From positions 185,641-249,640 of IMG/VR virus record IMGVR_UViG_3300024239_000014: a stretch of DNA of 64,000 nucleotides; one strand, 5' to 3'. Both the position numbers and the translations under genes were made by a program. Numbering within the stretch: the first letter of the stretch is position 1; each line of letters opens with the position of its first letter. Below, piece after piece: positions 1 to 60,267 of the stretch. The notes under the pieces were generated by a model. The model worked only from the letters and a program-made list of their open reading frames with translations, was not told the DNA's origin and searched no databases.

Positions 1-949
1 CAAAGATCGACAACCCCAGTAGACGCATCCACATGTGGGTATCTTCCAGGTCTTCCAGGTACAAGATGCGGTTCGGGTAATGATCCATCACGTAGAAGAA
101 CCCAGCCACCATGGATTCCACTTTCGCTGTTACGTGAGCCCGTTTGACAGCCAAACGAATGGTCGTAGCTGACCACGGCTTACGGCGCATGCTGGAGGGA
201 GTTGACCCCGATGGACCGTAGATGACGTAGCTGTCAGGCGGGAAGTTCGTGGTGTTGATTTCATCCAACGTACCGACATGGACATTGGTTTCTGCAAACA
301 CGGCGAAAGCCCGGCTCAATCCGTATTTGGCGAACATGTACAGCGCCAGCGGTTCCACCGATTTCACGAAGTCCGTGTGTTTGGTCACGGAGCGATCGGG
401 TTTGTGGTGGTGGATGGAGCTGTGGTGGTAGAACGTGGGGCGGTGGTTACCGTCGACCGAAATGGTCCACTGCGTCTGACGGAAGATTAATTTATCGCGC
501 GTTAGCGGTACGTACAGCAGGTTCTTGGTTACCGATACACACCGATCTGCCAATACCGGTGAAATGGTAAATACCGAGCCTCTGAGCACAATGGTGCCTG
601 CATCGCCCAGATAGGGTAACAACAGGTACCGTGGTCGCAGCTTGGACGCGTTGTATTCGAAATTGAACTGCACCATGTACAGGTCTGAACGACTAACGTC
701 ATAAAGACTTTTGCCGGAAGGACTCCGGCTGGTACGGATGCGAGCCAACTCCATGAACTGGCGATACGGATCCACTCGTTCATAGCCGAGGTATTTCAGC
801 CCAGGTGGGAAGCTCTGCATGGCACAGCGCCAAATCCGGTCAATATTGACTTCCGGACTTTCCATTTGTCGAGTGACAATCCCTTCTGCAATCGTTGGAT
901 TGAATTTGGGTTGTTTCGACTGGATATAGGCGAATAATCTGTCATCCAT
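1..949 (-). CDS. nvRNAP beta-like N-terminal subunit (phiKZ gp123-like), 3' end outside window
   Basis: Absent from the ORF track. Translated by hand from ATG at 949 (overlaps upstream stop, ATGGATGA): MDDRLFAYIQSKQPKFNPTIAEG...YLLLPY...GFFYVMDHYPNRI...WMRLLG, open to base 1. Synteny after the capsid gene matches phiKZ gp120-gp123. Confidence 0.8.
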   Translation of the reverse strand, partial: MDDRLFAYIQSKQPKFNPTIAEGIVTRQMESPEVNIDRIWRCAMQSFPPGLKYLGYERVDPYRQFMELARIRTSRSPSGKSLYDVSRSDLYMVQFNFEYNASKLRPRYLLLPYLGDAGTIVLRGSVFTISPVLADRCVSVTKNLLYVPLTRDKLIFRQTQWTISVDGNHRPTFYHHSSIHHHKPDRSVTKHTDFVKSVEPLALYMFAKYGLSRAFAVFAETNVHVGTLDEINTTNFPPDSYVIYGPSGSTPSSMRRKPWSATTIRLAVKRAHVTAKVESMVAGFFYVMDHYPNRILYLEDLEDTHMWMRLLGLSIF

Positions 950-1976
950 CTTTCCCTCCTCCTAACTTTTTCTTAAAGGTCAGAATCACAGTTGCCAGAC
1001 CGATTGCCGCAGTCACGACCTTGGCTACTGTTTCAAAGGTTTTACCGGTACCTTGTACTCGCTGTTCGATCAGTTTACGTTCAGCTTGGATCTCATCTCG
1101 AGCCAGTTCGCGAGTGAGGACTTCTTTCTTCAGCTCCAGTTTTTCTTGTTCGAATACGGCTTCTGGATTGCCGTTTGCTTTCGCAAGGGCATAGGATGAA
1201 TAAACCCGAATGGGGCACTTACCCTTTTCCAGATCTTCAAACGACATGACCAGGTGGGGTACCGCATTCGGAGTACGGCGCAATCCAGAGAACTTCGTAT
1301 TCCAACCGTTGGTTATTAGATGCACACCGTCCGCTAGGTTGGGGTCCGTCACTCGTGGGATTTCAAAGGGCTCTGCTCCGAATATTGAAAACAGTCGACC
1401 ATAGCGGTTAAACTGATCGACATAAAACATCCGGAACTGAGTGTCGTCCTTATTCTTCTCGACTTGGTCGTAGAAGTGATTAACGACATCTTCTACGGCA
1501 TGCGGATGACTCAACAACGAATCAGCACCAACGACACTAATAACCATATCCAGGTTATGGTCGTAAATCACACCACCAAGTTCGATGATCTCATCAAACG
1601 TAACGGTGTAAATATAGCTAGCAGTCTGCGGACCGCTTTGATGCCGGCAAATCAAATCTTGTAACTTGTTTGCCAGGGAGTAGCCACTAACAGATGATAC
1701 CGGTACGTCCGTTTTAACATAGTAGTTGTAGGTATCGTAATACTCAATTTCCAAACGCCGTTGAGCGTTACGCATGTCGCCGCGAATAAACTCCTGTCTG
1801 GGTGGCAGGGTAATGCGTAAACCACTACGCTCAATCAGCACAACTTCCCGGTCACTACAGTTGAGGATCTTGCGGTGAGTGCTAAATTCAGGGTTGCTGT
1901 TATTATTGCGAAAGACAGCGACTTCCGGATAATGGACAGTAACCGGGAGGCTAGCGCTGTAAGTGCGGTCGGTCAT
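942..1976 (-). CDS. conserved protein (phiKZ gp122 position) with coiled coil and C-terminal hydrophobic anchor
   Basis: Track ORF 942..2000; likelier start MTDRTY at 1976 (GGAG upstream). C-terminus VAKVVTAAIGLATVILTFKKK. Confidence 0.7.
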   Translation of the reverse strand: MTDRTYSASLPVTVHYPEVAVFRNNNSNPEFSTHRKILNCSDREVVLIERSGLRITLPPRQEFIRGDMRNAQRRLEIEYYDTYNYYVKTDVPVSSVSGYSLANKLQDLICRHQSGPQTASYIYTVTFDEIIELGGVIYDHNLDMVISVVGADSLLSHPHAVEDVVNHFYDQVEKNKDDTQFRMFYVDQFNRYGRLFSIFGAEPFEIPRVTDPNLADGVHLITNGWNTKFSGLRRTPNAVPHLVMSFEDLEKGKCPIRVYSSYALAKANGNPEAVFEQEKLELKKEVLTRELARDEIQAERKLIEQRVQGTGKTFETVAKVVTAAIGLATVILTFKKKLGGGKDG

Positions 1977-2012
1977 GTAGAACTCCGTAATGACAAGCAC
2001 CGCACCTACAGG

Positions 2013-2267
2013 CTACGTAGATTGTCGGTGGCGAAAATAGAGGATGCCGTATGCGACTAAGGCAGCTGTGGCAGCAACTGTAACCTTAGCCAACAGGCTG
2101 GTTTTCTGAGGCGGGTACTCAGTTTCGTCAAAGAGCACTGTCTGATCGTTTTCATCAACGACGACTGTGCGCACCATTGACTTCCCGCTGGGATACTTCG
2201 TCTGGATGCGATGACGCTTTGTGCGTTTAAGCACCAGCGGCTGCTTCGGTTCGGTCTGATCGGTCAT
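2013..2267 (-). CDS. small single-pass membrane protein (84 aa)
   Basis: C-terminal LLAKVTVAATAALVAYGILYF followed by RHR; GGGGT RBS; tight operon spacing. Confidence 0.75.
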   Translation of the reverse strand: MTDQTEPKQPLVLKRTKRHRIQTKYPSGKSMVRTVVVDENDQTVLFDETEYPPQKTSLLAKVTVAATAALVAYGILYFRHRQST

Positions 2268-2270
2268 GAC

Positions 2271-2519
2271 TTACCCCTTCTTAATGGGTAGCAAGAACGC
2301 CAACACCGCACTATACAAGACGATATCGGCATGGCGGTACAACACCTTTACAAAGTCTGGTGCTGTGGGGGAGATGTGGATCGATCGTTTACTGCGATGG
2401 ATCCGGTTGTTGATTGATGTGGTTTTGTGGCGCAATACCAGACCTGCAAACGTTTGTTCGCGGGTAGTGGTGACCAATTCAACTTCATCGGTCTTCTGAG
2501 CAACGGAACATGGTATCAC
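2271..2519 (-). CDS. small protein with C-terminal hydrophobic segment (82 aa)
   Basis: GGAGG RBS; ends IVLYSAVLAFLLPIKKG. Confidence 0.7.
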   Translation of the reverse strand: MIPCSVAQKTDEVELVTTTREQTFAGLVLRHKTTSINNRIHRSKRSIHISPTAPDFVKVLYRHADIVLYSAVLAFLLPIKKG

Positions 2520-2528
2520 ACGTCCTCC

Positions 2529-2738
2529 TTAGCTACTGTTGCGTTCACCGACAAGGCGGCGGATGACACCGATCATGGCAGCGACAACCAGGGTTGCACC
2601 GACGACACGTTCAGTGGGGGTGGCACTGCGATCCAACTCAAAACGGATGTCGGTATCAGTACTACCGGTGATATCGTCACTGGTGGTGGAAGTCAGTGCA
2701 ATACCCAGAAAGTTTACGGATTTCTTCACAGTCGACAT
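2529..2738 (-). CDS. small single-pass membrane protein (69 aa)
   Basis: GAGGT RBS; VVGATLVVAAMIGVI followed by RR. Confidence 0.7.
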   Translation of the reverse strand: MSTVKKSVNFLGIALTSTTSDDITGSTDTDIRFELDRSATPTERVVGATLVVAAMIGVIRRLVGERNSS

Positions 2739-2796
2739 GATATTTACCTCGAGTTACGGTTGGTTGTAAAGGAAGGAGATTGGGGGTGCAGATAGA

Positions 2797-2824
2797 TAAT
2801 ATCTGTTTCAAAAACCGTTGGATT
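2797..2824 (-). promoter_or_regulatory. putative early (virion RNAP) promoter
   Basis: AATCC-AACGGTT-TTT-GAAACA-GATAT-TA; same spacing as five other copies. Confidence 0.55.
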
Positions 2825-2825
2825 T

Positions 2826-2878
2826 GCGGCATAAAACAAAAAAAAAGAGAGGGGTCATAACTCCCTCTCTTTTGCCGG
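2826..2878. terminator. bidirectional intrinsic terminator with TGCCG tails
   Basis: AAAAGAGAGGG/CCCTCTCTTTT stem; tails TTTTGCCGG (+) and TTTTATGCCGC (-). Confidence 0.8.
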
Positions 2879-2882
2879 TGGC

Positions 2883-3110
2883 TTAGCCCTCGCTGGGCTC
2901 GCCACCGTTGCCGGCGTACTTGCTGTACGCATAGGCTGCACCGCCGATCACGGCGGCAGCCAAGGCACCGTACCCCACGACCTTGGCGGTCGTGGCCCAC
3001 CAAGAAGACTTGGCAGGTGCTGCGGTAACTGTCGGCATGGGAACAGCGGCGGCTACCGCCTCGGCGGTGGCGGCGATGGCTTCAGCGGCGTTGGTGTTGG
3101 TCTGAGACAT
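2883..3110 (-). CDS. small Ala-rich single-pass membrane protein (75 aa)
   Basis: GAGG RBS; VVGYGALAAAVIGGAAYAY segment; GC3-rich codons. Confidence 0.8.
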   Translation of the reverse strand: MSQTNTNAAEAIAATAEAVAAAVPMPTVTAAPAKSSWWATTAKVVGYGALAAAVIGGAAYAYSKYAGNGGEPSEG

Positions 3111-3186
3111 GATAAATTCCTCGTGTTTTGGGTTTTGGTTCCGGCTTGTGGTAAGTGACTCCCGCCGGAAGGAGTCACCTTTTTGT

Positions 3187-3327
3187 TTAGTAGCCCCGGC
3201 GATTGCCGAGGCTAAGGGCTATTAGGCCGAACACCACCGCGGTGGCGACTCCGGCCAAGAAACCCCTGGTGAACACCTTTTCGGCGTCCACCTGGGCCTC
3301 GTCGGTGGCAGTGGCGGGAGAACTCAT
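3187..3327 (-). CDS. small single-pass membrane protein (46 aa), not in ORF track
   Basis: MSSPATATDEAQVDAEKVFTRGFLAGVATAVVFGLIALSLGNRRGY*; GGAG/AAGGG RBS; fills the gap between neighbouring ORFs. Confidence 0.75.
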   Translation of the reverse strand: MSSPATATDEAQVDAEKVFTRGFLAGVATAVVFGLIALSLGNRRGY

Positions 3328-3334
3328 GACGCCC

Positions 3335-3517
3335 TTACTCCCGCCCGAAGGCGAGACGCAGGGCGCCTCGCAGCAGGACGCCGCCGATCGTCCCGGCTAT
3401 CAAGCCGGTGATCAGTGGGGTGACGACGCTGACGTGGCTGGTCTCCATCTCGTCGATCTCGTCACGCACCGCACGGGCGCTGGCGGCGGCGTTCTGGAAC
3501 TCGGTACGAATATCCAT
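3335..3517 (-). CDS. small single-pass membrane protein (60 aa)
   Basis: AAGGAG RBS; VSVVTPLITGLIAGTIGGVLL then RGALR. Confidence 0.75.
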   Translation of the reverse strand: MDIRTEFQNAAASARAVRDEIDEMETSHVSVVTPLITGLIAGTIGGVLLRGALRLAFGRE

Positions 3518-3521
3518 TACT

Positions 3522-3635
3522 TTACTCCTTATTCATCTTGGCAGCCAGGTAGCTGCCAACAATGAAAATTACGGTACCGTAAAATGCCGTGTTATAGACG
3601 GCAGCGGTGATTTTGCGCGAGGTTTTGACCTTCAT
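3522..3635 (-). CDS. small single-pass membrane protein (37 aa), not in ORF track
   Basis: AGGAG RBS; MKVKTSRKITAAVYNTAFYGTVIFIVGSYLAAKMNKE*; first ORF after the promoter at 3689-3715. Confidence 0.7.
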   Translation of the reverse strand: MKVKTSRKITAAVYNTAFYGTVIFIVGSYLAAKMNKE

Positions 3636-3688
3636 TTTAAACTCCTATGTTCTGGGGTTCAGTATTACTACCGTAGACTCACCTGTGC

Positions 3689-3715
3689 GATATAGGTCTG
3701 AGATTTTTTTGGATT
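3689..3715 (-). promoter_or_regulatory. putative early (virion RNAP) promoter
   Basis: AATCC-AAAAAAA-TCT-CAGACC-TATAT-C. Confidence 0.7.
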
Positions 3716-3742
3716 CGATTTTCATTAGTTTTTAATAGACTT

Positions 3743-3771
3743 GCGGCATAAGAGAGCCCCGAAGGGCTCTC
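3743..3771 (-). terminator. capsid gene terminator
   Basis: GAGAGCCC-TTCG-GGGCTCTC followed by TTATGCCGC. Confidence 0.8.
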
Positions 3772-3816
3772 CCATGACTTTACCATCGTCTGTCGAGGGT
3801 TGCTCACCCCGGCAGA

Positions 3817-5988
3817 TTAGGCCTGCTCTTTGGTCGGAACAGCCTTCAGCGCCACCAGAGCCTTGTCCAGGTTGGTCACGTTGATCACGAACCACACCGG
3901 CAGGTTGTGGACGTGAACGTTACGCGGCTGTACAGACAGCTGGTTGTAAGTGGCGTTGCCACGGCTCACCGGACCGGTGCTGACCAGTTCAGGGATCCAG
4001 TAGTGGTTACCGGAGCTGAGCGGGCAGAAGCCGCTGCGACCCTTGCGGGTGAAGGTGCCGATGATCTTGTTCTGCATGCGAACGTCCGGGGTAGCCAGGA
4101 CTTCGAAGTCCATGCCGATACCAGCGGTGCGCGGGTCACCCTGGATCATCATGTACTGTTGCAGGTTGATATCGGTACCCAGCAGCAGGGTCGGCTTGTC
4201 TTCGGCACCACCGCTGACCTGCTGGAGGGCAGGCAGGTAGTTGGATTCGACGACGGCGCGGTAGGCCACTTCGCGTACGGTGTTCAGGATCAGCGAGTTC
4301 AAGTCGGCCACGCGGTCGGTAGAACGCAGGGTCTGTACCTGAGCAAAGAGATCCAGAGCCACTTCGGCGTAGAACGGGGTTACCAGCCAACGACCAGCAC
4401 CTTCCAGACTGGCGCTGGAATCAGCACCGGCACCGATCAGGTGTTTGTTCTGGGCGCAGAAAGCCTTCAGACCTTCGAGGTAGTTCAGCTGTGCGGCGAT
4501 AGCACGGTTGCTGGTGGCGATGCGAGTCGCGTTCACCAGGTCGTCGAGGCCGACAGAGACGTTCTCTTCAGTGGTGGGCACCTGGACGCTGATCGGAGCG
4601 CCGACCGGGATCGGGGTGTAGTCGGTCTTGTAGCCGCGGTCCAGCAGCAGGCCAGCGGTGCGGCGGTTGCTGTTGATACGGTTGGCTTTCAGATCGATAC
4701 CGACAACGGTGAACACCAGGTCAGCGAGGATCGGGGCCAGGGTGGCATCGGCCGGAGAGATCAGGTCTTTGGTCACGCGGTGATAGGCTTTGCCAGCCGA
4801 CACCGAACCATCGAACTTGTAGTGGCCGGTCTGCACGTTCACGCTACCAGACAGCGACAGATCCAGGTGGATCTGGAACTCAGTGGTGTTCAGGTCAGAC
4901 AGCGGAGCAGGCTGAGCGCCAGCCGGGTTCTTGGTGTCCTTGTCGACGGCCAGTTCGCTGGTCATGGCGGACAGGGTCAGCTCGTAGGCGTCACCAGCAG
5001 GCGCTTTGTACATTTCGAAGCGCTTGAGGTTGGCGGTCGGGAACTTCACGACGCCGACTTCGGTGCCGGCACCGTTGGCCACGCGAACGTACACAGCAGA
5101 AACGGTGATGGCTTCCTGGATCTGATCGGTCTGGTCGTAGGTACCTTCCAGAGCGGCCGGGTTCTGGCTCAGGGCCAGCAGGTCACCAGCGACGCCGATG
5201 GCGATCGGAGCGGTGTTGTAGGTAACACCGTTGACTTCTTTGGCCACCGGGGCCACGAGCGAAGCGGCGACGAACTTGTTCAGGTTGCTGTTGTCAGCCT
5301 GTACGTGCGGGATCAGAGCAGTCGACGGAGCGTCGAGCAGCTTGCTGTCGCGGTAGGCTTCGAGGATGTTCTTGAAGTTCCAGGACTTGACGTCGCCGGA
5401 CAGAGCGCGCTGAGCGCCTTTGAACACGCGGATCACCGGAACTTTGGTAACCACGGCAACCTGGTCAGGGGTCTGCACCACAGTCGGGTAGAAACCTTCG
5501 GCGTAGTTGTCCTGACGGGCAGCGCCGTAGTTCCAGGCAGCAGAGTAGGCAGCCACAACGGTCAGGTCGCGGTTGTCAAAAGCTTCCATGGCGACGTCGG
5601 TGAAGGACACGTCCATGGCGCCGTGGATACCCACGGTGGTCGGCATGATAACGTTGGCACCTTCCATCGACATGGCGGCAGTGGCCAGAGCTTTGGCCTG
5701 GTAACGGTTGGCGCTGGCGGCGCCCATGAAGGCGATCTGAGCGGCTTCGAGAGCAACGGAGTCAGCAGCAGCATCACCAGCGAAGAGACCTTTCAGCTCA
5801 TTCTGGATGTTGCGGCCGGAGGCGACCAGGGCGCTGCGAGCAGTAGGAGTGGCAGATTCGAGCGACAGCAGGGCGCCAACGTCGTCGGCACCAACCACGA
5901 CATCACCACGTTTCTGGAGAGAAACGAGTTCATCAGCAGCCTGACCAATGGACTTGGTCGCGGCGTTCTGGGTATTGAAAATCGACAT
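3817..5988 (-). CDS. major capsid protein (phiKZ gp120-like)
   Basis: 723 aa; strong GC3 codon bias; N-terminal propeptide with A/S-X-E sites (SLES, ALEA, SMEG, AMEAF); FYPTVV and RQD motifs; divergent from the DnaB gene as in phiKZ gp118-120. Confidence 0.9.
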   Translation of the reverse strand: MSIFNTQNAATKSIGQAADELVSLQKRGDVVVGADDVGALLSLESATPTARSALVASGRNIQNELKGLFAGDAAADSVALEAAQIAFMGAASANRYQAKALATAAMSMEGANVIMPTTVGIHGAMDVSFTDVAMEAFDNRDLTVVAAYSAAWNYGAARQDNYAEGFYPTVVQTPDQVAVVTKVPVIRVFKGAQRALSGDVKSWNFKNILEAYRDSKLLDAPSTALIPHVQADNSNLNKFVAASLVAPVAKEVNGVTYNTAPIAIGVAGDLLALSQNPAALEGTYDQTDQIQEAITVSAVYVRVANGAGTEVGVVKFPTANLKRFEMYKAPAGDAYELTLSAMTSELAVDKDTKNPAGAQPAPLSDLNTTEFQIHLDLSLSGSVNVQTGHYKFDGSVSAGKAYHRVTKDLISPADATLAPILADLVFTVVGIDLKANRINSNRRTAGLLLDRGYKTDYTPIPVGAPISVQVPTTEENVSVGLDDLVNATRIATSNRAIAAQLNYLEGLKAFCAQNKHLIGAGADSSASLEGAGRWLVTPFYAEVALDLFAQVQTLRSTDRVADLNSLILNTVREVAYRAVVESNYLPALQQVSGGAEDKPTLLLGTDINLQQYMMIQGDPRTAGIGMDFEVLATPDVRMQNKIIGTFTRKGRSGFCPLSSGNHYWIPELVSTGPVSRGNATYNQLSVQPRNVHVHNLPVWFVINVTNLDKALVALKAVPTKEQA

Positions 5989-11800: not shown

Positions 11801-13177
11801 TTACACTCGCTTCATCGCTGCATTAAGAAGTAATACCAGCACAGGGATGTAATAGAAACGCTCCATCAAGCCCCAGTTAGGGACATCGTTGATCAAGCGA
11901 ATCAATACATCCGTATCCAGCTCCATCTTTTCCAGATAGCGCCAGGTCTGATATTCCAGATGTGATTGGCCGTACGTGGACTTGGTGTAGAACCGTTCGG
12001 ACAATACGTAGAAGTCATCGCACCCGACAGGGTGGATCAACGGGACGGTGATTTGATCTGGTGGGATGTCACCGGTGCCGTTTAAGATTCGGTTGCGGAT
12101 GGCGTAGGTCAGTTCGATAGCCTCGATCTCGGGTTCGCTGTAAGGGCTTACCAAACGCTCGTGTGTTATCGCTACATCGCGACCATCAACCGATAACCCT
12201 CGGTTTTTCGGAAAGAGTGTGCGCTCAATGGCCGAAAACCGCAAGCCTCGGAAATACGCTCTCGCTGGTAACTGGCTCACCGATACCGTATCAAACTCAC
12301 GCTCCAACTGATCGATGAGGACAGCATCACCACGAATCAGACATTGCCACAGCGTCAGGACTTCAAAGCCCTGGTCTCCGCCAGGAACGTAGTGCTTGAT
12401 TCGTTTATCCGCAGGTTGGGTCTGGTAAGGGAACCAGTAATCCAGAATGTCCATCATAAACGGGTCGTACGTTTTCTTGTGCTGACGTGGCACCAAGAAG
12501 GTCTTGGTTGCAGCATCGTAACACTGGGCCATGTATCGAACCCGGAGGTCCTCGATGGCTTTCCCCATGACCAAGATGGCATTATGCTCACCTTCGATCA
12601 CGATGGGGTTCTGGCCGCTGATGACAAACTCGCGGTGGAAGTAAGTCGTCTTAACCGTTTTACGTTCGAGATCGACTTTACGTTCTTCCGTCAGGTAATC
12701 CACGACCTGATACTGAATTGCATAAGTCGTATCCCGAAAGATATTCTTCTGTTCGACTTCGGTCACTTCGAACACAGCGCGACGCCCATCGCCAATGTCG
12801 GCAATGAACATATCGCCTTTGTTGGGACGGAACGATGGATAAATCGTACCACCGCCTGACAGTTTGGATTCTGACGTCTCAGCTTCAAATGACGACGTCA
12901 GCGGGTCCGTTACTTTCAGCTCAAACCCGTTGATGACTTGGTACTGCTGCTCAATCGGAGCACGATCGGGCTGTTGGGCAGACACCTCATTATCAGTGGT
13001 CAGCAGCTGGCGGTAGTAGGTTACAATCCAACTACTCCCTTCCACATAAACCAGCATTTGCGATACTGCAGTTTTCTGCGCATCAACAGGCAGGCCTTTG
13101 TAGGGCGTCTTAGATGTGTAAATCGGTTTCTTCTCTTCAGCCACGGGTGTGGCTGCCGGTACAAATAGCGGCGGCAT
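11801..13177 (-). CDS. virion structural protein (phiKZ gp99-like)
   Basis: Likelier start MPPLFVP at 13177 (AAGGGG RBS); YVEGSSW, PNKGDMFIADIGDG and ERFYYIP motifs. Confidence 0.65.
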   Translation of the reverse strand: MPPLFVPAATPVAEEKKPIYTSKTPYKGLPVDAQKTAVSQMLVYVEGSSWIVTYYRQLLTTDNEVSAQQPDRAPIEQQYQVINGFELKVTDPLTSSFEAETSESKLSGGGTIYPSFRPNKGDMFIADIGDGRRAVFEVTEVEQKNIFRDTTYAIQYQVVDYLTEERKVDLERKTVKTTYFHREFVISGQNPIVIEGEHNAILVMGKAIEDLRVRYMAQCYDAATKTFLVPRQHKKTYDPFMMDILDYWFPYQTQPADKRIKHYVPGGDQGFEVLTLWQCLIRGDAVLIDQLEREFDTVSVSQLPARAYFRGLRFSAIERTLFPKNRGLSVDGRDVAITHERLVSPYSEPEIEAIELTYAIRNRILNGTGDIPPDQITVPLIHPVGCDDFYVLSERFYTKSTYGQSHLEYQTWRYLEKMELDTDVLIRLINDVPNWGLMERFYYIPVLVLLLNAAMKRV

Positions 13178-13187
13178 AATAAACCCC

Positions 13188-29054: not shown

Positions 29055-31046
29055 ATGCCCAATCTAGCCAAGAAAACCATCGTCGCACGAGAATGTCGTC
29101 ACGTCACGCACGTTACCGACCAGACACCTGATAGCGATAAAGACCTACTCGTCGCTAAGGAAGTTGTCCATTATTCCGATGGTACCAGCGAACCCAGATT
29201 ACAGTTCTTTGAAAACTATCCGATTGACTTCTATGTCACCAAGACTGGGTTTCGAAATCACACCGACAAGAAACTGTTTGAGCACATTGAGAAGCTTGAT
29301 CAGGTGAAGTGTACTCAACGTACGCTGGGGCAAACCATCGCCCGTGTACTACGCACCACCTATCAGCCCAATCTTCGGGTAATGGGACGCAGTCCATTCC
29401 TGTACGGTTCTGACGTTCCCTCTACAGTGCGATTGAAACACCGATACAAGAAGAAGTGGACTGACAAACAGACGCTCAATACGGTAGCCGTCTGTGACTT
29501 AGAAACCGATGTGGTTTGGGGGACTAGCGAGATTCTATCAGGCACCTTGTCGTTCAAAAACAAAGTACTCCTGGTGGTCAATCGAAAGTTCGTCGATACA
29601 CTACCGCTCTTTCAGAAAACGTTGCTTGAGAAGTTTGAAAAACATCTCGGAGAAGTAAAACGTCAGCGTGGCATTAATCTTCAGGTGGAGATTGCTGAAA
29701 CGCCTGGTCAGGTGGTCACCACACTCCTGCGTTATGCACATGAATGGAAACCAGATTTTCTAGCCTTTTGGAATATGGACTACGATATTCCAAAAATGAT
29801 TGATGCGTTGGAATACGAGCGCTTTGATCCAGCGTACTACTTTTCTGATCCGTCAGTCCCGGCACATTATCGGTACTTCCAGTACAAGCAAGGTCAGAAG
29901 GCGCTGACGACGGCAAGTGGTAAGCATAAGCCTTACGATCCGGCAGAACAGTGGCATACCGTGATCTGTCCGGCCAGTTTCTATGTCATCGATGCCATGT
30001 GTGCTTATTACCGGATTCGTATGGCCGGTGGTAAAGACTCCAGCTATTCATTGAATGCCGTACTGACTAAAGAACTCGGCATCCGTAAGCTGGACTTTAA
30101 AGAAGCCGAAGGGTTGGATGGTTTGGCATGGCACACGTTCATGCAACAGTACTACAAGATCGAGTATCTGATCTACAACATCTTTGACTGTATTTCAGTG
30201 GAGATGTTGGACGAGAAGACTAAAGATCTGTCGAGCACCATTTCGGTGCTAAATGGTTGCAGTGACTACCACACCTTCTCCAGTCAACCACGACGGACCT
30301 GTAATGACTTGCACTTCTTTGCATTGGAGAACGGGCACGTTATTGCGGCTACGTCTGATAAGATGGAGACCGAGCTCGATAAGCTAACCGTAGACGTCAG
30401 CGGGTGGATCGTCACCTTACCTGCGCACATGATTGTTCAGCACGGTGTGGCATGCATCGAAGAATTTCCGGATTTAAACACATGCATCTACCTCCATGTA
30501 GCGGATTAACAACATAGTCCCTTCCAGGAGTAATCTTGGTCGAATAACCCATCTAATTGCAAGAAAGCCGTAAAGGCCTCGGCAGGCCAGGTAACTTGCA
30601 GCGAAGCTTCCTTCTGGGAAGAACGTTCAACGACTATCGAAAGCCAGTGATATCTCACTGAAGCGAGTAGAGTAGGGGACAGCGTCCCCGAAATGGTGGG
30701 CCACCTCTAATACAGGTGGATGACATAGTCTGCTCTTATGCGAATAGCATAAGCGGGTACCTGAGCGTACCGAGTGTATTTAGCGCATACACTGGACAAT
30801 AGGATCGACGTAGCAGCCGCATACCCCAACGGAGAGGACATCAACAACATCAGCCATGAGACCACATTCCGAGAACTGTCTCAAATTGCTGGCGTAACGG
30901 ATGAAGCTCGTCGGCGTTGTGGTATTAACTTCACAGGCGGACCTAACAACGCTGTGGAGATCTGTCGAGAAATTTACAAATTGCCCGATCTCCATACCCT
31001 CTATTTAGACTTTGAAGACAGCCGCACTATTAACCAAGCGGCATAA
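29055..31046 (+). CDS. family B DNA polymerase subunit (exonuclease + motif A; phiKZ gp82-like), spliced: exon 1 29055-30506, exon 2 30804-31046, 564 aa
   Basis: ExoI CDLETD, ExoII FWNMDYD, ExoIII YNIFDC. Splicing joins VAD|IDVAAAYPN (motif A). Confidence 0.85.
30507..30803 (+). mobile_element. group I self-splicing intron, 297 nt, no ORF
   Basis: 5' exon ends in U (GGAU pairs with IGS GUCC) and intron ends in G. P AATTGCAAGAAA, Q TTGCAGCGAAGC, R GTTCAACGACTATC, S ATGACATAGTCT; P3 CCCATC/GGTGGG; starts with an in-frame TAA. Confidence 0.9.
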
Positions 31047-38087: not shown

Positions 38088-38128
38088 AAAAAAAAGAGGA
38101 GGGGTAACACCCTCCTCTTTTATGCCGC
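38088..38128. terminator. bidirectional terminator
   Basis: AAAAGAGGAGGG/CCCTCCTCTTTT; + strand tail TATGCCGC. Confidence 0.8.
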
Positions 38129-38134
38129 CTCCCA

Positions 38135-38503
38135 TTACAGGAGGCGGATGACAAGGCCGATCAGGCCGCTGACCGCGCCGGCAGCCAGACCTTGAGCGGT
38201 GACCTCTTCCCGCTCAGCCTTCCGGGCTGCTGCTCGTGCAACCCGGATTTTCTCCTCCAGTTCGGCCACTTTGGCCTCAATGAAGGAGAGCTTGCCAGCA
38301 AGCAGGAATGCCGCCTGCTGGTCGCCATTGGCCACCTTCCGGAAAAGGTGGCCAGTTTCCTTGGACCAGCTTGACAGCTGGTCCCGAGTGACTCCGAGCC
38401 CGGCGGCTCGGGTCAGCACGGCGTCTAGCCGTGCTTTGGCTTCCGCCGGAGCGGAAGCGACGGCCTGGGGTTCGAAAGAACCCCATGTGAGCGTTGAGCT
38501 CAT
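38135..38503 (-). CDS. small helical protein with C-terminal membrane anchor (122 aa)
   Basis: Likelier start MSSTLTW at 38503 (AAGGAG; ATGA overlap); ends GLAAGAVSGLIGLVIRLL. Confidence 0.7.
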   Translation of the reverse strand: MSSTLTWGSFEPQAVASAPAEAKARLDAVLTRAAGLGVTRDQLSSWSKETGHLFRKVANGDQQAAFLLAGKLSFIEAKVAELEEKIRVARAAARKAEREEVTAQGLAAGAVSGLIGLVIRLL

Positions 38504-38832: not shown

Positions 38833-38936
38833 ACCTCCTCTCCTCGTCCCTGAGTGGTGGTTACCCAGAAGACCTATGGCGGTTTATGTTAAGAAAGTCA
38901 AATGGGTCCAGCATTTGAACTCTCCGTTCACCTGAG

Positions 38937-38964
38937 GAATATAGGTTTGAAATCTGTTGGAATT
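38937..38964 (-). promoter_or_regulatory. putative early promoter
   Basis: AATTC-CAACAGA-TTT-CAAACC-TATAT-TC. Confidence 0.65.
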
Positions 38965-40203: not shown

Positions 40204-40244
40204 GCGGCATAAGGCGGATGGGAATCCCATCCGCCGTTTATGGG
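40204..40244 (-). terminator. intrinsic terminator
   Basis: GGCGGATGGG/CCCATCCGCC followed by TTATGCCGC. Confidence 0.75.
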
Positions 40245-58419: not shown

Positions 58420-60267
58420 TTACCAGCGAGATGAACCGGCGTAGCCGACGTTGGTCTGGGTGCCGAACTGCTGGGTCTGATGCAGCTGCTGGCCGATACC
58501 GCTGTTGCCGAGGCCCAGCAGACCGAGGTTCTGACGAACCTGCGGCACGCCGTAGAAGCTACCGCGAGAATCGTTCAGACGGATGCCAGCACCCACTTCC
58601 TTCATGGCAGCAGCCAGTGCGGACAGGAAGTCCGGGGTGAAGGTCAGGTGGTAGCCATACCCGGCCAGCTCGTAACCAGGCAGCAGAGCACCGAGCAGGC
58701 GAGCACGTTCAGCCAGGCAAACCGATGCAGGACGACCGGCACGGTTTTCGATGGTTTCGATGTAGCTCGCACGTGCGTGCGGGTCCTGCTGAGTCAGGGC
58801 CAGGATCGCCAGGTGGTCGATATCGCGGATATCCCGCTTCTCGCCGTTGGCGTCGGTGTAGGTACCGAGCAGGATCTGACGACGCAGGGTAACGACTTGC
58901 GGACCCTGTTTCCAGTGGTTGCTGAACGCACCGCCGGTCAGGTTGTTCGCAGCATTCAGGATGGCGGTAGTCGCGGCCTGATTGCCCATCGCCGAGCTGA
59001 TGAACTCGTTGTAGATCGCACTGTACGGGCCAGTGGGATCGACCTGCAACGAAATGATCAGGTTACGGTGGAAAAAGTCGTTGAAGAACGCGCCCATTTC
59101 CTCAGGGGACATGGCGCCGCCTTTGAGACCCTTCACCGGAGCGAACGGAGCGCCCGGCTGTGGCTGATACTCGGTACCCAGGATGCCGACGTCGCGCTGG
59201 TTGATGTCGTTCTTGCTGCCCTTGCCACCCATACCACGCGGCTGGTAAGCCCAGGACCACAGAGCGTTCTCTTCCAGCAGACCAGCAGACACCAGTGCCA
59301 TCAGCACGCGGTCGAGATGCATGTCAACCGACAGCGTGGAGATGTCGGTGATGACCGCTTCGGCCATGTACGCCTTGGTGGAACCCGGCTGCACGATGCC
59401 GTTGACGACCTGCTGACCCACCGGGCCAACGAAGTTGGTGTCAACGTAACCATGCACACGGAACAGGTCACAACCGGCGTTGGCGATGGTACCCGGCTTG
59501 GTGTTTGCCGGACTGGCGCCAACCGAGATCACGACATCAGCACGCACCGGACGACCAACAGCATCAGCGGTCTGCACCAGCGGGAACTGAACAGTACCGT
59601 TCAGCTGTGCCGGTTCTTCCGGAGTACGCAGGGCGATGGCCAGGTTCAGCGGCATGGCTTCGTCGGCCTTGGCGGTGATGTTGGCAAACAGCACGTGGGC
59701 CAGGCGGCGCATGGCGGTTTCGTCGCTGGTATCGATATCGCTCGGCACCACGAGGCAGCCGGAATCGATGACTTCGGCTACGTTGGCGATGCTGTCTTTC
59801 AGGCGACGCTCAACTGCTGACCAGAAGTCGTTGTTCCAGCAGTCGCCGGTGGTGACAGGCAGTTCGTACTGCTGGCCCATGTACTGCTCGACACGCGGTT
59901 GGATGCGGCCGGTCGGTGCCTGGGTCATGATGACGCTGACAAACAGTTTCTTGTCAGCACGGAACTTGCACACGGCAAGCGCGTTGGCCGGGAGGCGGTT
60001 GGCGGCTGCATCCAGCGGCATGGCATGCCAGCCAGCGCCAGCTTCTTTCAGGAAGGTGGACAAACCTTCATGCAGGCGGCGCAGGGTCTCGGCGTCGGCC
60101 ACCGGACGAACCGGAGTGTTACCCGTGCCAGCCAGGGCGAAAATCGAACCCACTGCGCGAGTAGCCACGTCGGCAGCTACCGACTGGGCGGGCGCACCGG
60201 TATCGACCGGAGCACGAGTCGGGGTCTGTGCAGCAGCGGCAGGTTTGGTTTTATCGTTCAAGGCCAT
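58420..60267 (-). CDS. chmA: chimallin, phage nucleus shell protein (phiKZ gp54-like)
   Basis: 615 aa with flexible A/P N-terminus and G/Q C-terminus; GYVDTNF...AVITD...LMAL...W..AYQP pattern; lies between the gp52-like gene and nvRNAP beta'; early promoter; strong codon bias. Confidence 0.85.
   Translation of the reverse strand: MALNDKTKPAAAAQTPTRAPVDTGAPAQSVAADVATRAVGSIFALAGTGNTPVRPVADAETLRRLHEGLSTFLKEAGAGWHAMPLDAAANRLPANALAVCKFRADKKLFVSVIMTQAPTGRIQPRVEQYMGQQYELPVTTGDCWNNDFWSAVERRLKDSIANVAEVIDSGCLVVPSDIDTSDETAMRRLAHVLFANITAKADEAMPLNLAIALRTPEEPAQLNGTVQFPLVQTADAVGRPVRADVVISVGASPANTKPGTIANAGCDLFRVHGYVDTNFVGPVGQQVVNGIVQPGSTKAYMAEAVITDISTLSVDMHLDRVLMALVSAGLLEENALWSWAYQPRGMGGKGSKNDINQRDVGILGTEYQPQPGAPFAPVKGLKGGAMSPEEMGAFFNDFFHRNLIISLQVDPTGPYSAIYNEFISSAMGNQAATTAILNAANNLTGGAFSNHWKQGPQVVTLRRQILLGTYTDANGEKRDIRDIDHLAILALTQQDPHARASYIETIENRAGRPASVCLAERARLLGALLPGYELAGYGYHLTFTPDFLSALAAAMKEVGAGIRLNDSRGSFYGVPQVRQNLGLLGLGNSGIGQQLHQTQQFGTQTNVGYAGSSRW

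Follow-up and report, generated by a model that had tools for sequence, protein, structure and literature searches.

Seven small genes for predicted membrane proteins form two contrasting transcription units between the capsid gene and the nvRNAP operon of a phiKZ-related phage

Introduction

Phage T4 encodes Imm and Sp, early small inner-membrane proteins of superinfection exclusion, and T4-like phages carry hyperplastic early regions. The host-takeover module of Bacillus phage SPO1 includes the membrane protein gp56. Nucleus-forming jumbo phages have been studied for their membrane and protein compartments, and their early phage-encoded membrane proteins are almost uncharacterized. The described system closest to the locus reported here is the gp120-gp123 region of phiKZ, a phage whose type of terminators and early promoters has been described (Putzeys 2024, PMC10914365; Wicke 2020, PMC8244752; Sokolova 2020 review, PMC7598289). 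The phiKZ terminator consensus is a hairpin followed by TTATKYYGT (PMC10914365), and phage transcription changes strongly when phiKZ gp122 is knocked down with antisense oligonucleotides (ASOs) (PMC12571901). Here, we describe a cassette of seven small open reading frames (ORFs) at the equivalent position in an uncultivated jumbo phage, represented by the IMG/VR virus record IMGVR_UViG_3300024239_000014. The window that we analyzed is the last 64 kb of this 249,640-bp record (positions 185,641 to 249,640), and coordinates are those of the window unless given as genome positions.

On the minus strand, the major capsid gene is followed by the seven small ORFs, a 344-amino-acid (aa) gp122-like protein and the start of a non-virion RNA polymerase (nvRNAP) subunit. 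A previous sequence-only reading had treated the seven as a single early membrane kit. We found instead two transcription units that evolve in opposite ways, one a hypervariable swap module and the other a conserved set tied to gp122 and the nvRNAP. Our best explanation, held with moderate confidence, is a two-unit insertion of early bitopic membrane proteins, with unit 1 an exchanged accessory module and unit 2 tied to gp122/nvRNAP. The genes of the locus are as follows.

3817..5988, minus strand: major capsid protein gene (PHROG 3231 major head protein, E 5e-155; Pfam PhiKZ_MCP on the record), the upstream neighbor, outside the cassette
3522..3635, minus strand: 37-aa protein; Shine-Dalgarno (SD) site and ATG, basic N-terminus (+4), 24 uncharged residues, tail KMNKE
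3335..3517, minus strand: 60-aa protein; acidic amphipathic N-terminus, GxxxGxxxG helix, basic tail ending FGRE
3187..3327, minus strand: 46-aa protein; acidic variable N-terminus, conserved helix, tail NRRGY
2883..3110, minus strand: 75-aa protein; Ala-rich variable N-terminus, WW motif, Gly/Ala-rich helix, acidic tail
2529..2738, minus strand: 69-aa protein; C-terminal helix, tail RRLVGERNSS
2271..2519, minus strand: 82-aa protein; basic N-domain with a conserved RSIHISPTAPDF block, short C-terminal helix, tail KKG
2013..2267, minus strand: 84-aa protein; Lys/Arg-rich N-domain, C-terminal helix, tail RHRQST
942..1976, minus strand: gp122-like protein, 344 aa (PHROG 7727, E 1.8e-23)
2..949, minus strand: N-terminal part of the nvRNAP subunit, phiKZ gp123-like (PHROG 2943 polymerase, E 4.7e-78; synteny with phiKZ gp123)

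Results

Two transcription units with opposite evolution

All seven small genes have orthologues in up to four related metagenomic contigs (L002, L009, L010 and L015). Of the relatives that provide context, the nearest is L002, a 139.6-kb ENA contig with 60% identity in the capsid protein. Its locus holds nine small genes, among them orthologues of all seven window ORFs (32-60% aa identity); L009, L010 and L015 were found through the small proteins themselves. Unit 1 contains the 37-, 60-, 46- and 75-aa genes and runs from a promoter motif (motif A) to a terminator (T2) at 3720-2825. Unit 2 contains the 69-, 82- and 84-aa genes, which are tightly packed against the gp122-like and nvRNAP genes.

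The comparison with L009 separates the two units. The capsid, 69-, 82- and 84-aa, gp122-like and nvRNAP genes are 96.5-99.6% identical at the nucleotide (nt) level (synonymous divergence, dS, 0.02-0.16), whereas the 37-, 60-, 46- and 75-aa genes are only 77-86% identical (dS 0.39-1.6), with a ratio of nonsynonymous to synonymous divergence (dN/dS) of 0.07-0.34. The divergent block begins at about 3680, just past motif A, and ends with the stop codon of the 75-aa gene at about 2880; it is thus unit 1 minus its promoter and terminator. One wastewater strain has 74 differences and 29 gap positions over 2377-3456, compared to 14 over 1253-2328. The number of genes in unit 1 varies from 3 to 6 per strain, and at its head L002 and L010 each have two additional genes for single-helix proteins (50 and 45/46 aa). 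When these two contigs are compared with each other, the neighboring proteins are 83-92% identical, but the 37-aa and 60-aa proteins are only 54% and 53% identical. Unit 2, on the other hand, tracks the gp122-like gene: against L015, its three proteins are 78, 76 and 68% identical and the gp122-like protein 73%.

Divergence confined to unit 1, together with gene gain and loss and the divergence of the 37- and 60-aa proteins, shows unit 1 to be a mosaic, recombining, hypervariable module with the 37/60 pair as its most variable core. Homologous recombination at the conserved promoter and terminator may be the means by which strains exchange it, a proposal that shares the roughly even chance we give to the best explanation as a whole. 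The wastewater strain with the many differences over 2377-3456 (X9) also joins 3517 to 3668, such that 3518-3667 (the 37-aa gene and its leader) is gone.

The seven ORFs are genes under purifying selection

The minus-strand ORFs of 37, 60, 46, 75, 69, 82 and 84 aa are present at the sizes originally reported, and a GGAG/AGGA/GAGG-type sequence lies close 5' of all seven starts, in agreement with the proposal that each has a ribosome site. We could not reproduce the statement that the 37- and 46-aa ORFs are missing from the gene track, given that the JGI caller and our own codon-model caller both find all seven.

The mismatches between the window and L002 are distributed as in coding sequence (second codon position < first < third, 0.35/0.46/0.63 pooled), with nonsynonymous below synonymous differences per site (pN < pS) in every pair. 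For every differing gene, dN/dS against L009 and L015 lies between 0.06 and 0.34. Starts and SD sites are kept across five genomes, and when wastewater strains are aligned with the window, all indels within genes are net multiples of three. The seven ORFs are real genes under purifying selection.

We considered whether they could instead be chance ORFs in intergenic or regulatory DNA, with plus-strand ORFs as the true genes. The ORFs are very short and have no family matches, and GC-rich DNA yields long antisense ORFs. This reading is nevertheless highly improbable in view of the frame-specific conservation, a dN/dS well below 1, the in-frame indels and the starts and SD sites kept in five genomes, and because the antisense frames are broken or unconserved in L002. 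The plus-strand ORFs at 2427-2795 (122 aa) and 3203-3565 (120 aa) were rejected as the true genes on the latter ground. Long antisense ORFs above GC-rich small genes such as these can mislead gene callers that favor the longest ORF.

Within unit 1, the 37-aa protein is known from four alleles that are 54-78% identical (dN/dS 0.07 against L009), the 60-aa protein from four that are 46-87% identical (dN/dS 0.14), the 46-aa protein from four (dN/dS 0.28, with an in-frame 3-nt indel in one wastewater strain) and the 75-aa protein from five that are 47-83% identical (dN/dS 0.34, strain indels again net multiples of 3). For unit 2, the 69-aa orthologues are 99% (L009), 78% (L015) and 39% (L002) identical, with dN/dS 0.06-0.20. 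The 82-aa orthologues are 100%, 76% (L015) and 32% identical (dN/dS 0.17), and the gene has a GTG start in the window and an ATG start in L015. The 84-aa orthologues are 99%, 68% (L015) and 34% identical.

A single hydrophobic helix near the C-terminus

Hydropathy was scored with the Kyte-Doolittle scale over a 19-residue window, and the best means of the seven proteins range from 1.47 to 2.23. In each of the seven, as in the gp122-like protein, 3-15 residues separate the end of the best window from the C-terminus, and no N-terminal hydrophobic segment was present in any of the eight. The expectation of one hydrophobic helix, usually C-terminal and followed by basic residues, was therefore borne out for the position of the helix (7/7) and for a net basic tail in 6/7; the 75-aa protein is the only one of the seven with an acidic tail after its helix. 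The last Lys/Arg-Glu codons (AAGGAG, CGGGAG) double as the SD site of the next gene. This overlap shows tight translational coupling, and the basic tail is partly a by-product because the next gene's SD site is read as Lys/Arg-Glu codons. Elsewhere in the genome, only about 5/40 small predicted genes encode a C-terminal hydrophobic helix, and for this reason seven such genes in a row are not due to chance (rough binomial p about 1e-5). From these features we infer that the seven proteins are probably inserted in membranes.

The helices are Gly/Ala-rich. The GxxxGxxxG pattern is invariant in 4/4 alleles of the 60-aa protein, and the other cassette helices carry GxxxG or small-xxx-small patterns. 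Charge balance, read by the positive-inside rule, suggests mixed topologies. The 37-aa protein (N-terminus +4) and the 75-aa protein (basic N-flank, acidic tail) both look N-in/C-out, whereas an N-out/C-in orientation is predicted for the 60-, 46- and 69-aa proteins, of which the 60- and 46-aa ones pair an acidic N-tail with a basic C-tail. For the 82- and 84-aa proteins, with helices of 15-17 uncharged residues, the balance is ambiguous. The label "tail-anchored" therefore holds in part: the single helix near the C-terminus and the lack of an N-terminal signal sequence agree with it, but the mixed topology predicted from charges does not. A search of the ESM Atlas with the 84-aa protein gave no lead (scores <=0.85, structural TM-score < 0.5).

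Promoter motif A suggests possible early expression

The following transcription signals flank the two units.

3679..3720 (core 3696-3679), minus strand: early-type promoter motif A, made up of AATCGAATCC, an A-run, CAGACCTATATC, five bases and GGTGA
2794..2809, minus strand: motif C (GAAACAGATATTATCT), a promoter-like element before unit 2, a 16-mer with 2 genome copies
3742..3776 (hairpin 3747-3776), minus strand: terminator T1, a GC-rich hairpin directly followed by TTATGCCGCA, after the capsid gene
2825..2872 (hairpin 2844-2872), minus strand: terminator T2 at the end of unit 1, a hairpin, U9 and then TTATGCCGCA, after the 75-aa gene
3153..3180, minus strand: internal hairpin between the 46- and 75-aa genes, a weak or degenerate terminator (fold -16.7 kcal/mol, z -2.85)

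Motif A has nine core copies in the genome. All are intergenic minus-strand sites, and each precedes a gene on that strand by 39-113 nt. Its matrix adds about eight weaker variants, and the 19 best matches are all on the minus strand; in the window there are 2 exact copies against 0.00 expected. It is kept in L002, L009 and L010, and it shares the hallmarks of phiKZ-type early promoters, being a conserved AT-rich element of ~10 nt that is repeated before operons with a leading-strand bias. In phiKZ, TATATTAC occurs at 120657, the syntenic spot between gp120 and gp121, before gp121. The phiKZ forward strand has 33 copies of TATATTAC compared to 10 for a control, in agreement with the 28-32 published phiKZ early promoters, and the early class of the promoter before gp121 rests on this motif count. 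Because motif A is repeated before genes and phiKZ has the same layout after its capsid gene, we read motif A, by analogy, as the probable early (virion RNA polymerase) promoter of this phage.

The other copy of motif C lies 41 nt before a minus-strand operon, in which a PHROG scan identified dihydrofolate reductase only. Motif C is strongly conserved in L009, L015 and L002. Against the motif A matrix it scores 12.4 (rank 17), compared to 36-58 for the core sites. Of the two early-promoter motifs initially proposed (3689 and 2797), the first coincides with the repeated motif at 3696-3679 and matches the phiKZ element, but the second is at best a weak variant. A sigma-70 promoter scan returned no minus-strand site before either unit. 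The intergenic region 2739-2882 has almost the same sequence in L009 and L015, even though identity in the coding flanks of L015 is only 61-74%. This segment (terminator, motif C and 5' leader) is thus under stronger constraint than the genes, as would be expected of a regulatory element or a recombination anchor.

Small membrane genes were also seen behind other copies of these motifs. The second copy of motif A in the window (38928-38945, minus strand) precedes a 110-aa gene and a 122-aa gene (38135-38503), and the last 17 residues of the 122-aa protein form a hydrophobic helix, so that this is a further early-operon protein with a C-terminal anchor. Elsewhere in the genome, three motif A operons begin with C-terminal-helix proteins of 58, 58 and 50 aa (genome 26720-27124 and 31306-31543; locus L012). 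In single comparisons, one of the 58-aa proteins shows weak similarity both to the cassette's 75-aa protein (E 0.013) and to the extra 50-aa protein of L002 (E 5e-4), which hints that small membrane genes may move between early operons. In phiKZ (NC_004629, about 106,875-108,500 and 4,516; L016 and L021), single-helix ORFs of 41-53 aa lie right behind TATATTAC. Small membrane ORFs directly after phiKZ early motifs are a few and not the rule, and some are perhaps unannotated; they may be counterparts of the cassette genes in a cultured phage.

Codon usage gave a hint of high expression for three genes of unit 1. When the 269 genes are ranked by GC content at third codon positions (GC3), the 60-aa gene is 1st, the 46-aa gene 3rd and the 75-aa gene 6th. 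Another early small membrane gene ranks 2nd, the capsid gene 4th and the chimallin gene 7th, and the high-GC3 trend holds in L009 and L010.

These features could also describe a host-takeover set, in which the proteins are membrane toxins or inhibitors of envelope processes (division, secretion or proton-motive force) that are not aimed at phages or defenses, comparable to the peptides with which other virulent phages shut off their hosts early. The proteins are very small, and the 37-aa protein consists of a basic end and one helix, as in small membrane-active peptides. GxxxG motifs favor oligomeric pores, the promoter is of early type and the codon bias is typical of highly expressed genes. 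However, conserved host targets predict conserved effectors, which is at odds with the allelic divergence and the gene gain and loss of unit 1, and the Pfam and PHROG scans returned no similarity to known toxin families. We consider host takeover rather unlikely.

Terminators delimit unit 1 and separate it from the capsid gene

T1 folds with -26 kcal/mol (z -4.55) and shows compensatory stem changes in L002; T2 folds with -21.6 kcal/mol (z -4.07) and is kept in L009, L015, L002 and L010. Both are intrinsic terminators of the phiKZ type, with a GC-rich hairpin and a match to TTATKYYGT, and TTATGCCG stands 3' of both hairpins. After the internal hairpin between the 46- and 75-aa genes, TTATGCCGG is retained in L002 in the alignment. 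The window contains 6 copies of TTATGCCGC against 0.30 expected, and hairpin plus TATGCCG occurs in about 40 copies in the genome. The window copies of the hairpin-terminator element are as follows.

2826-2834
3743-3751
13171-13179
31038-31046
38120-38128
40204-40212

A GC-rich hairpin followed by (T/C)TATGCCG is the standard inter-operon element of this genome and is also present after the capsid gene of Xoo-sp14. The element contains TATG, the phiKZ late-promoter core, and could double as a terminator and a late start. A 21-nt block just past the capsid stop (3792-3812, CTGCCGGGGTGAGCAACCCTC) is shared with L002, lies upstream of the T1 hairpin and could form a small hairpin of its own.

The position of the cassette after the late capsid gene and the TATG core in both upstream regions would suit a role in lysis control, as would small single-helix membrane proteins with charged C-termini, which could act as holins, antiholins or other lysis-timing factors. 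We regard this as very unlikely. A strong terminator separates the cassette from the capsid gene, unit 2 is joined to the nvRNAP operon, whose expression must precede that of late genes, and no muralytic or spanin gene adjoins the cassette as in a holin/lysis cassette. A more typical lysis locus is present > 100 kb away. This likely lysis locus (genome 80745-82750) has three membrane proteins directly before an SLT-domain protein, and genes for SLT-domain proteins are found at genome 82066, 49161 and 10002. A spanin-like pair of lipoprotein and membrane protein (genome 63336-64360) suggests a diderm host.

Unit 2 is linked to a conserved gp122-nvRNAP operon

The gp122-like protein matches PHROG 7727 (E 1.8e-23) and 7286 (E 7.4e-07), phiKZ gp122 matches 15024 and 7286, and Xoo-sp14_122 and the L002 protein match all three (7727/7286/15024). 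Its gene lies directly upstream of the gp123-like nvRNAP subunit gene, as in phiKZ, Xoo-sp14, L002 and L003, and its stop overlaps the nvRNAP start. The suggestion that the protein ends in the same way as the small proteins was correct: it terminates in a hydrophobic helix and KKK, and so do the relatives in phiKZ, Xoo-sp14, L002 and L003. An AlphaFold2 model from a 5-row alignment had a mean pLDDT of 45, too poor for a fold search; used loosely, it outlines a putative beta-rich N-domain, a long helical stalk and the C-terminal hydrophobic helix. Unit 2 may work together with gp122.

The phage is of the nucleus-forming type by its gene content

The genome combines a ChmA homologue, PhiKZ_MCP and an nvRNAP subunit, which identifies it as a member of the Chimalliviridae.

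Window about 58420-60267 (genome 244060-245907), minus strand: homologue of chimallin, the phage-nucleus shell protein, recognized by sequence match

The match (E 6e-28) lies in a 627-aa frame and is 27% identical to phiKZ gp54 over residues 110-599. From this homologue we judge the phage to be of the nucleus-forming type, and the Chimalliviridae biology on which the sequence-only reading had drawn plausibly applies. Near-identical DNA of the locus was found in public runs from 11 studies of subsurface, soil, groundwater and wastewater, which means that the lineage is widespread and that many further alleles of the variable unit could be assembled from public runs. Megablast identified no close relatives among GenBank phages, and the top capsid protein match there is only 34% identical. 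Scans of IMG/VR with the gp122-like and capsid proteins, an alignment of capsid proteins and a promoter DNA pattern returned only the window's own contig, and a JGI metagenome scan returned the source contig alone.

The cassette is restricted to one lineage

In the marine relative L003 and in Xoo-sp14, the capsid gene leads straight to the gp122-like gene and the small genes are absent there. In phiKZ the same position holds one 150-aa gene, gp121 (PHROG 23099), which has no hydrophobic helix. None of the seven proteins has a family match in Pfam (E up to 1) or PHROG (E up to 0.01), and these scans assigned none to an exclusion- or defense-related family, with PADLOC left unscanned. An exhaustive HMMER profile search with the 60-aa family against 1.84 billion cluster representatives recovered lineage alleles and one spurious repeat protein only, and word searches with the 60- and 82-aa proteins recovered lineage members only. 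The cassette is thus lineage-restricted and appears to be accessory. The region itself may well be an insertion specific to this lineage, placed between the capsid gene and the conserved operon of gp122 and the nvRNAP; as a part of the best explanation, we judge this to be evenly balanced.

The distribution also bears on the possibility that the proteins are a vesicle or nucleus kit. In this view, they would belong to the membrane of the early infection vesicle or would connect the vesicle with ribosomes and the nascent chimallin shell, and their part in structure or remodeling would be conserved. Chimalliviruses start infection in a lipid vesicle, and here a chimallin homologue is encoded and the promoter motif is of early type. 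Both unit 2 and gp122 are conserved, carry a C-terminal anchor and share their expression with the nvRNAP, and ASO knock-down of phiKZ gp122 strongly perturbs phage transcription (PMC12571901). For the basic N-domains of the 82- and 84-aa proteins, binding to nucleic acid or ribosomes is conceivable. A vesicle role fits poorly, however, because a function central to the vesicle should occur throughout the family, whereas the small genes are absent at the locus in phiKZ, Xoo-sp14 and L003 and no relatives outside the lineage were detected. In addition, the gene number and sequence of unit 1 vary between near-identical strains, unlike structural parts, and the vesicle arises at injection, before new protein synthesis. 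We therefore regard a vesicle or nucleus kit as unlikely.

Discussion

Our study describes seven ORFan families in a compact candidate set, four of them in a strain-exchanged promoter-to-terminator unit, with a codon usage that resembles that of the most highly expressed genes. In the two-unit reading that we prefer, the virion RNA polymerase would transcribe both units soon after injection. The proteins would then enter the host inner membrane, or a membrane derived from it, via one Gly/Ala-rich (GxxxG-type) helix, with the short acidic N-tails of the 60- and 46-aa proteins translocated and the 37- and 75-aa proteins anchored by the C-terminal helix. Once inserted, they might oligomerize or dock on membrane machinery of the host or of a rival phage. 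Unit 1 would serve as a strain-specific interface for superinfection exclusion, evasion of membrane-associated defenses or envelope takeover. Unit 2 would be translated from the same message as the gp122-like protein and the nvRNAP subunits and would act with gp122.

An accessory conflict interface appears to be the best fit for alleles that diverge deeply yet remain under purifying selection, for the gain and loss of genes and for exchange at the conserved flanks. Candidate conflicts are superinfection exclusion, evasion of membrane defenses and competition between co-infecting relatives. The hypervariability of unit 1 seems to suit the exclusion or arms-race idea, which had been raised before, better than a conserved structural or remodeling role. 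The contrast between a hypervariable and a conserved unit suggests two jobs, namely a conflict interface and a core-linked membrane anchor. In a more specific version that we consider a long shot, the co-diverging 37- and 60-aa proteins would be a cognate pair in a strain "identity" module that marks or guards the infected-cell or vesicle membrane and excludes or sabotages co-infecting chimalliviruses with other alleles, the alleles being kept by balancing selection and by cassette swapping at the promoter and terminator.

Several points weigh against the two-unit reading of early bitopic membrane proteins. Hydrophobicity was taken from a simple scale, and the helices of the 82-aa, 84-aa and gp122-like proteins are short (15-17 uncharged residues), such that these proteins may be peripheral anchors. 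Early timing is argued by analogy to phiKZ, and motif C is a weak variant only. TATG, the late-promoter core of phiKZ, lies inside the terminator motif of both intergenic regions, and late or continuous transcription is possible. The RNA-library contigs on 1871-2074, 2787-2934 and 3304-3456 are tiny and could be due to DNA carry-over. The high GC3 may stem from a composition rich in Ala and Gly or from a foreign source, and the trend is weaker in L002. A complex prediction for the 60-aa and 37-aa proteins (score 0.02, mark 0.32) is evidence neither way.

Known systems resemble different parts of the locus. The acidic N-tail, single helix and basic C-tail of the 60- and 46-aa proteins are reminiscent of the Pf3 coat protein (N-out/C-in, YidC-type insertion), and the basic N-flank and short C-tail of the 37- and 75-aa proteins are like those of tail-anchored proteins. 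These proteins have no relation to the filamentous-phage coats of Pf3 and M13, and their topology is predicted from charges only. The SPO1 module likewise groups very small early genes that have strong promoters and ribosome sites, and some of their products are membrane-bound and act on the host envelope. It uses host RNA polymerase promoters, as opposed to the presumed virion RNA polymerase here, and shows no homology to the cassette; it is not known as a strain-variable cassette.

T4 Imm and Sp are similar in that they are small early inner-membrane proteins behind early promoters, dispensable and variable among related phages. They differ in sequence (no Pfam/PHROG matches link them to the cassette), and here 3-6 co-transcribed single-helix proteins form a promoter-to-terminator swap unit in which exclusion is a putative function.

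The phiKZ gp120-gp123 locus is the closest match. It has the same order of capsid gene, gp122-family protein and nvRNAP subunit. The capsid gene is likewise followed by a hairpin-TTATG terminator and, some 50-90 nt beyond it, by an AT-rich early-type motif, and the gp122-family protein again ends in a hydrophobic helix. The signals are also alike: a GC hairpin followed by TTAT(G/T)(C/T)(C/T)G as terminator and, on the leading strand before operons, a ~10-nt AT-rich element with an upstream T/A-rich stretch. The predicted early promoter core differs, being CCTATAT(C/T) with GGTGA and an upstream AATCnAATCC rather than TATATTAC. At the position where phiKZ has one soluble-looking 150-aa gp121, this phage instead encodes seven small membrane proteins, with one more terminator and a second element that resembles a promoter. 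The terminators and early-promoter architecture of the phiKZ type thus reach a very distant relative (capsid protein about 30-34% identical), which will aid the annotation of uncultivated chimalliviruses.

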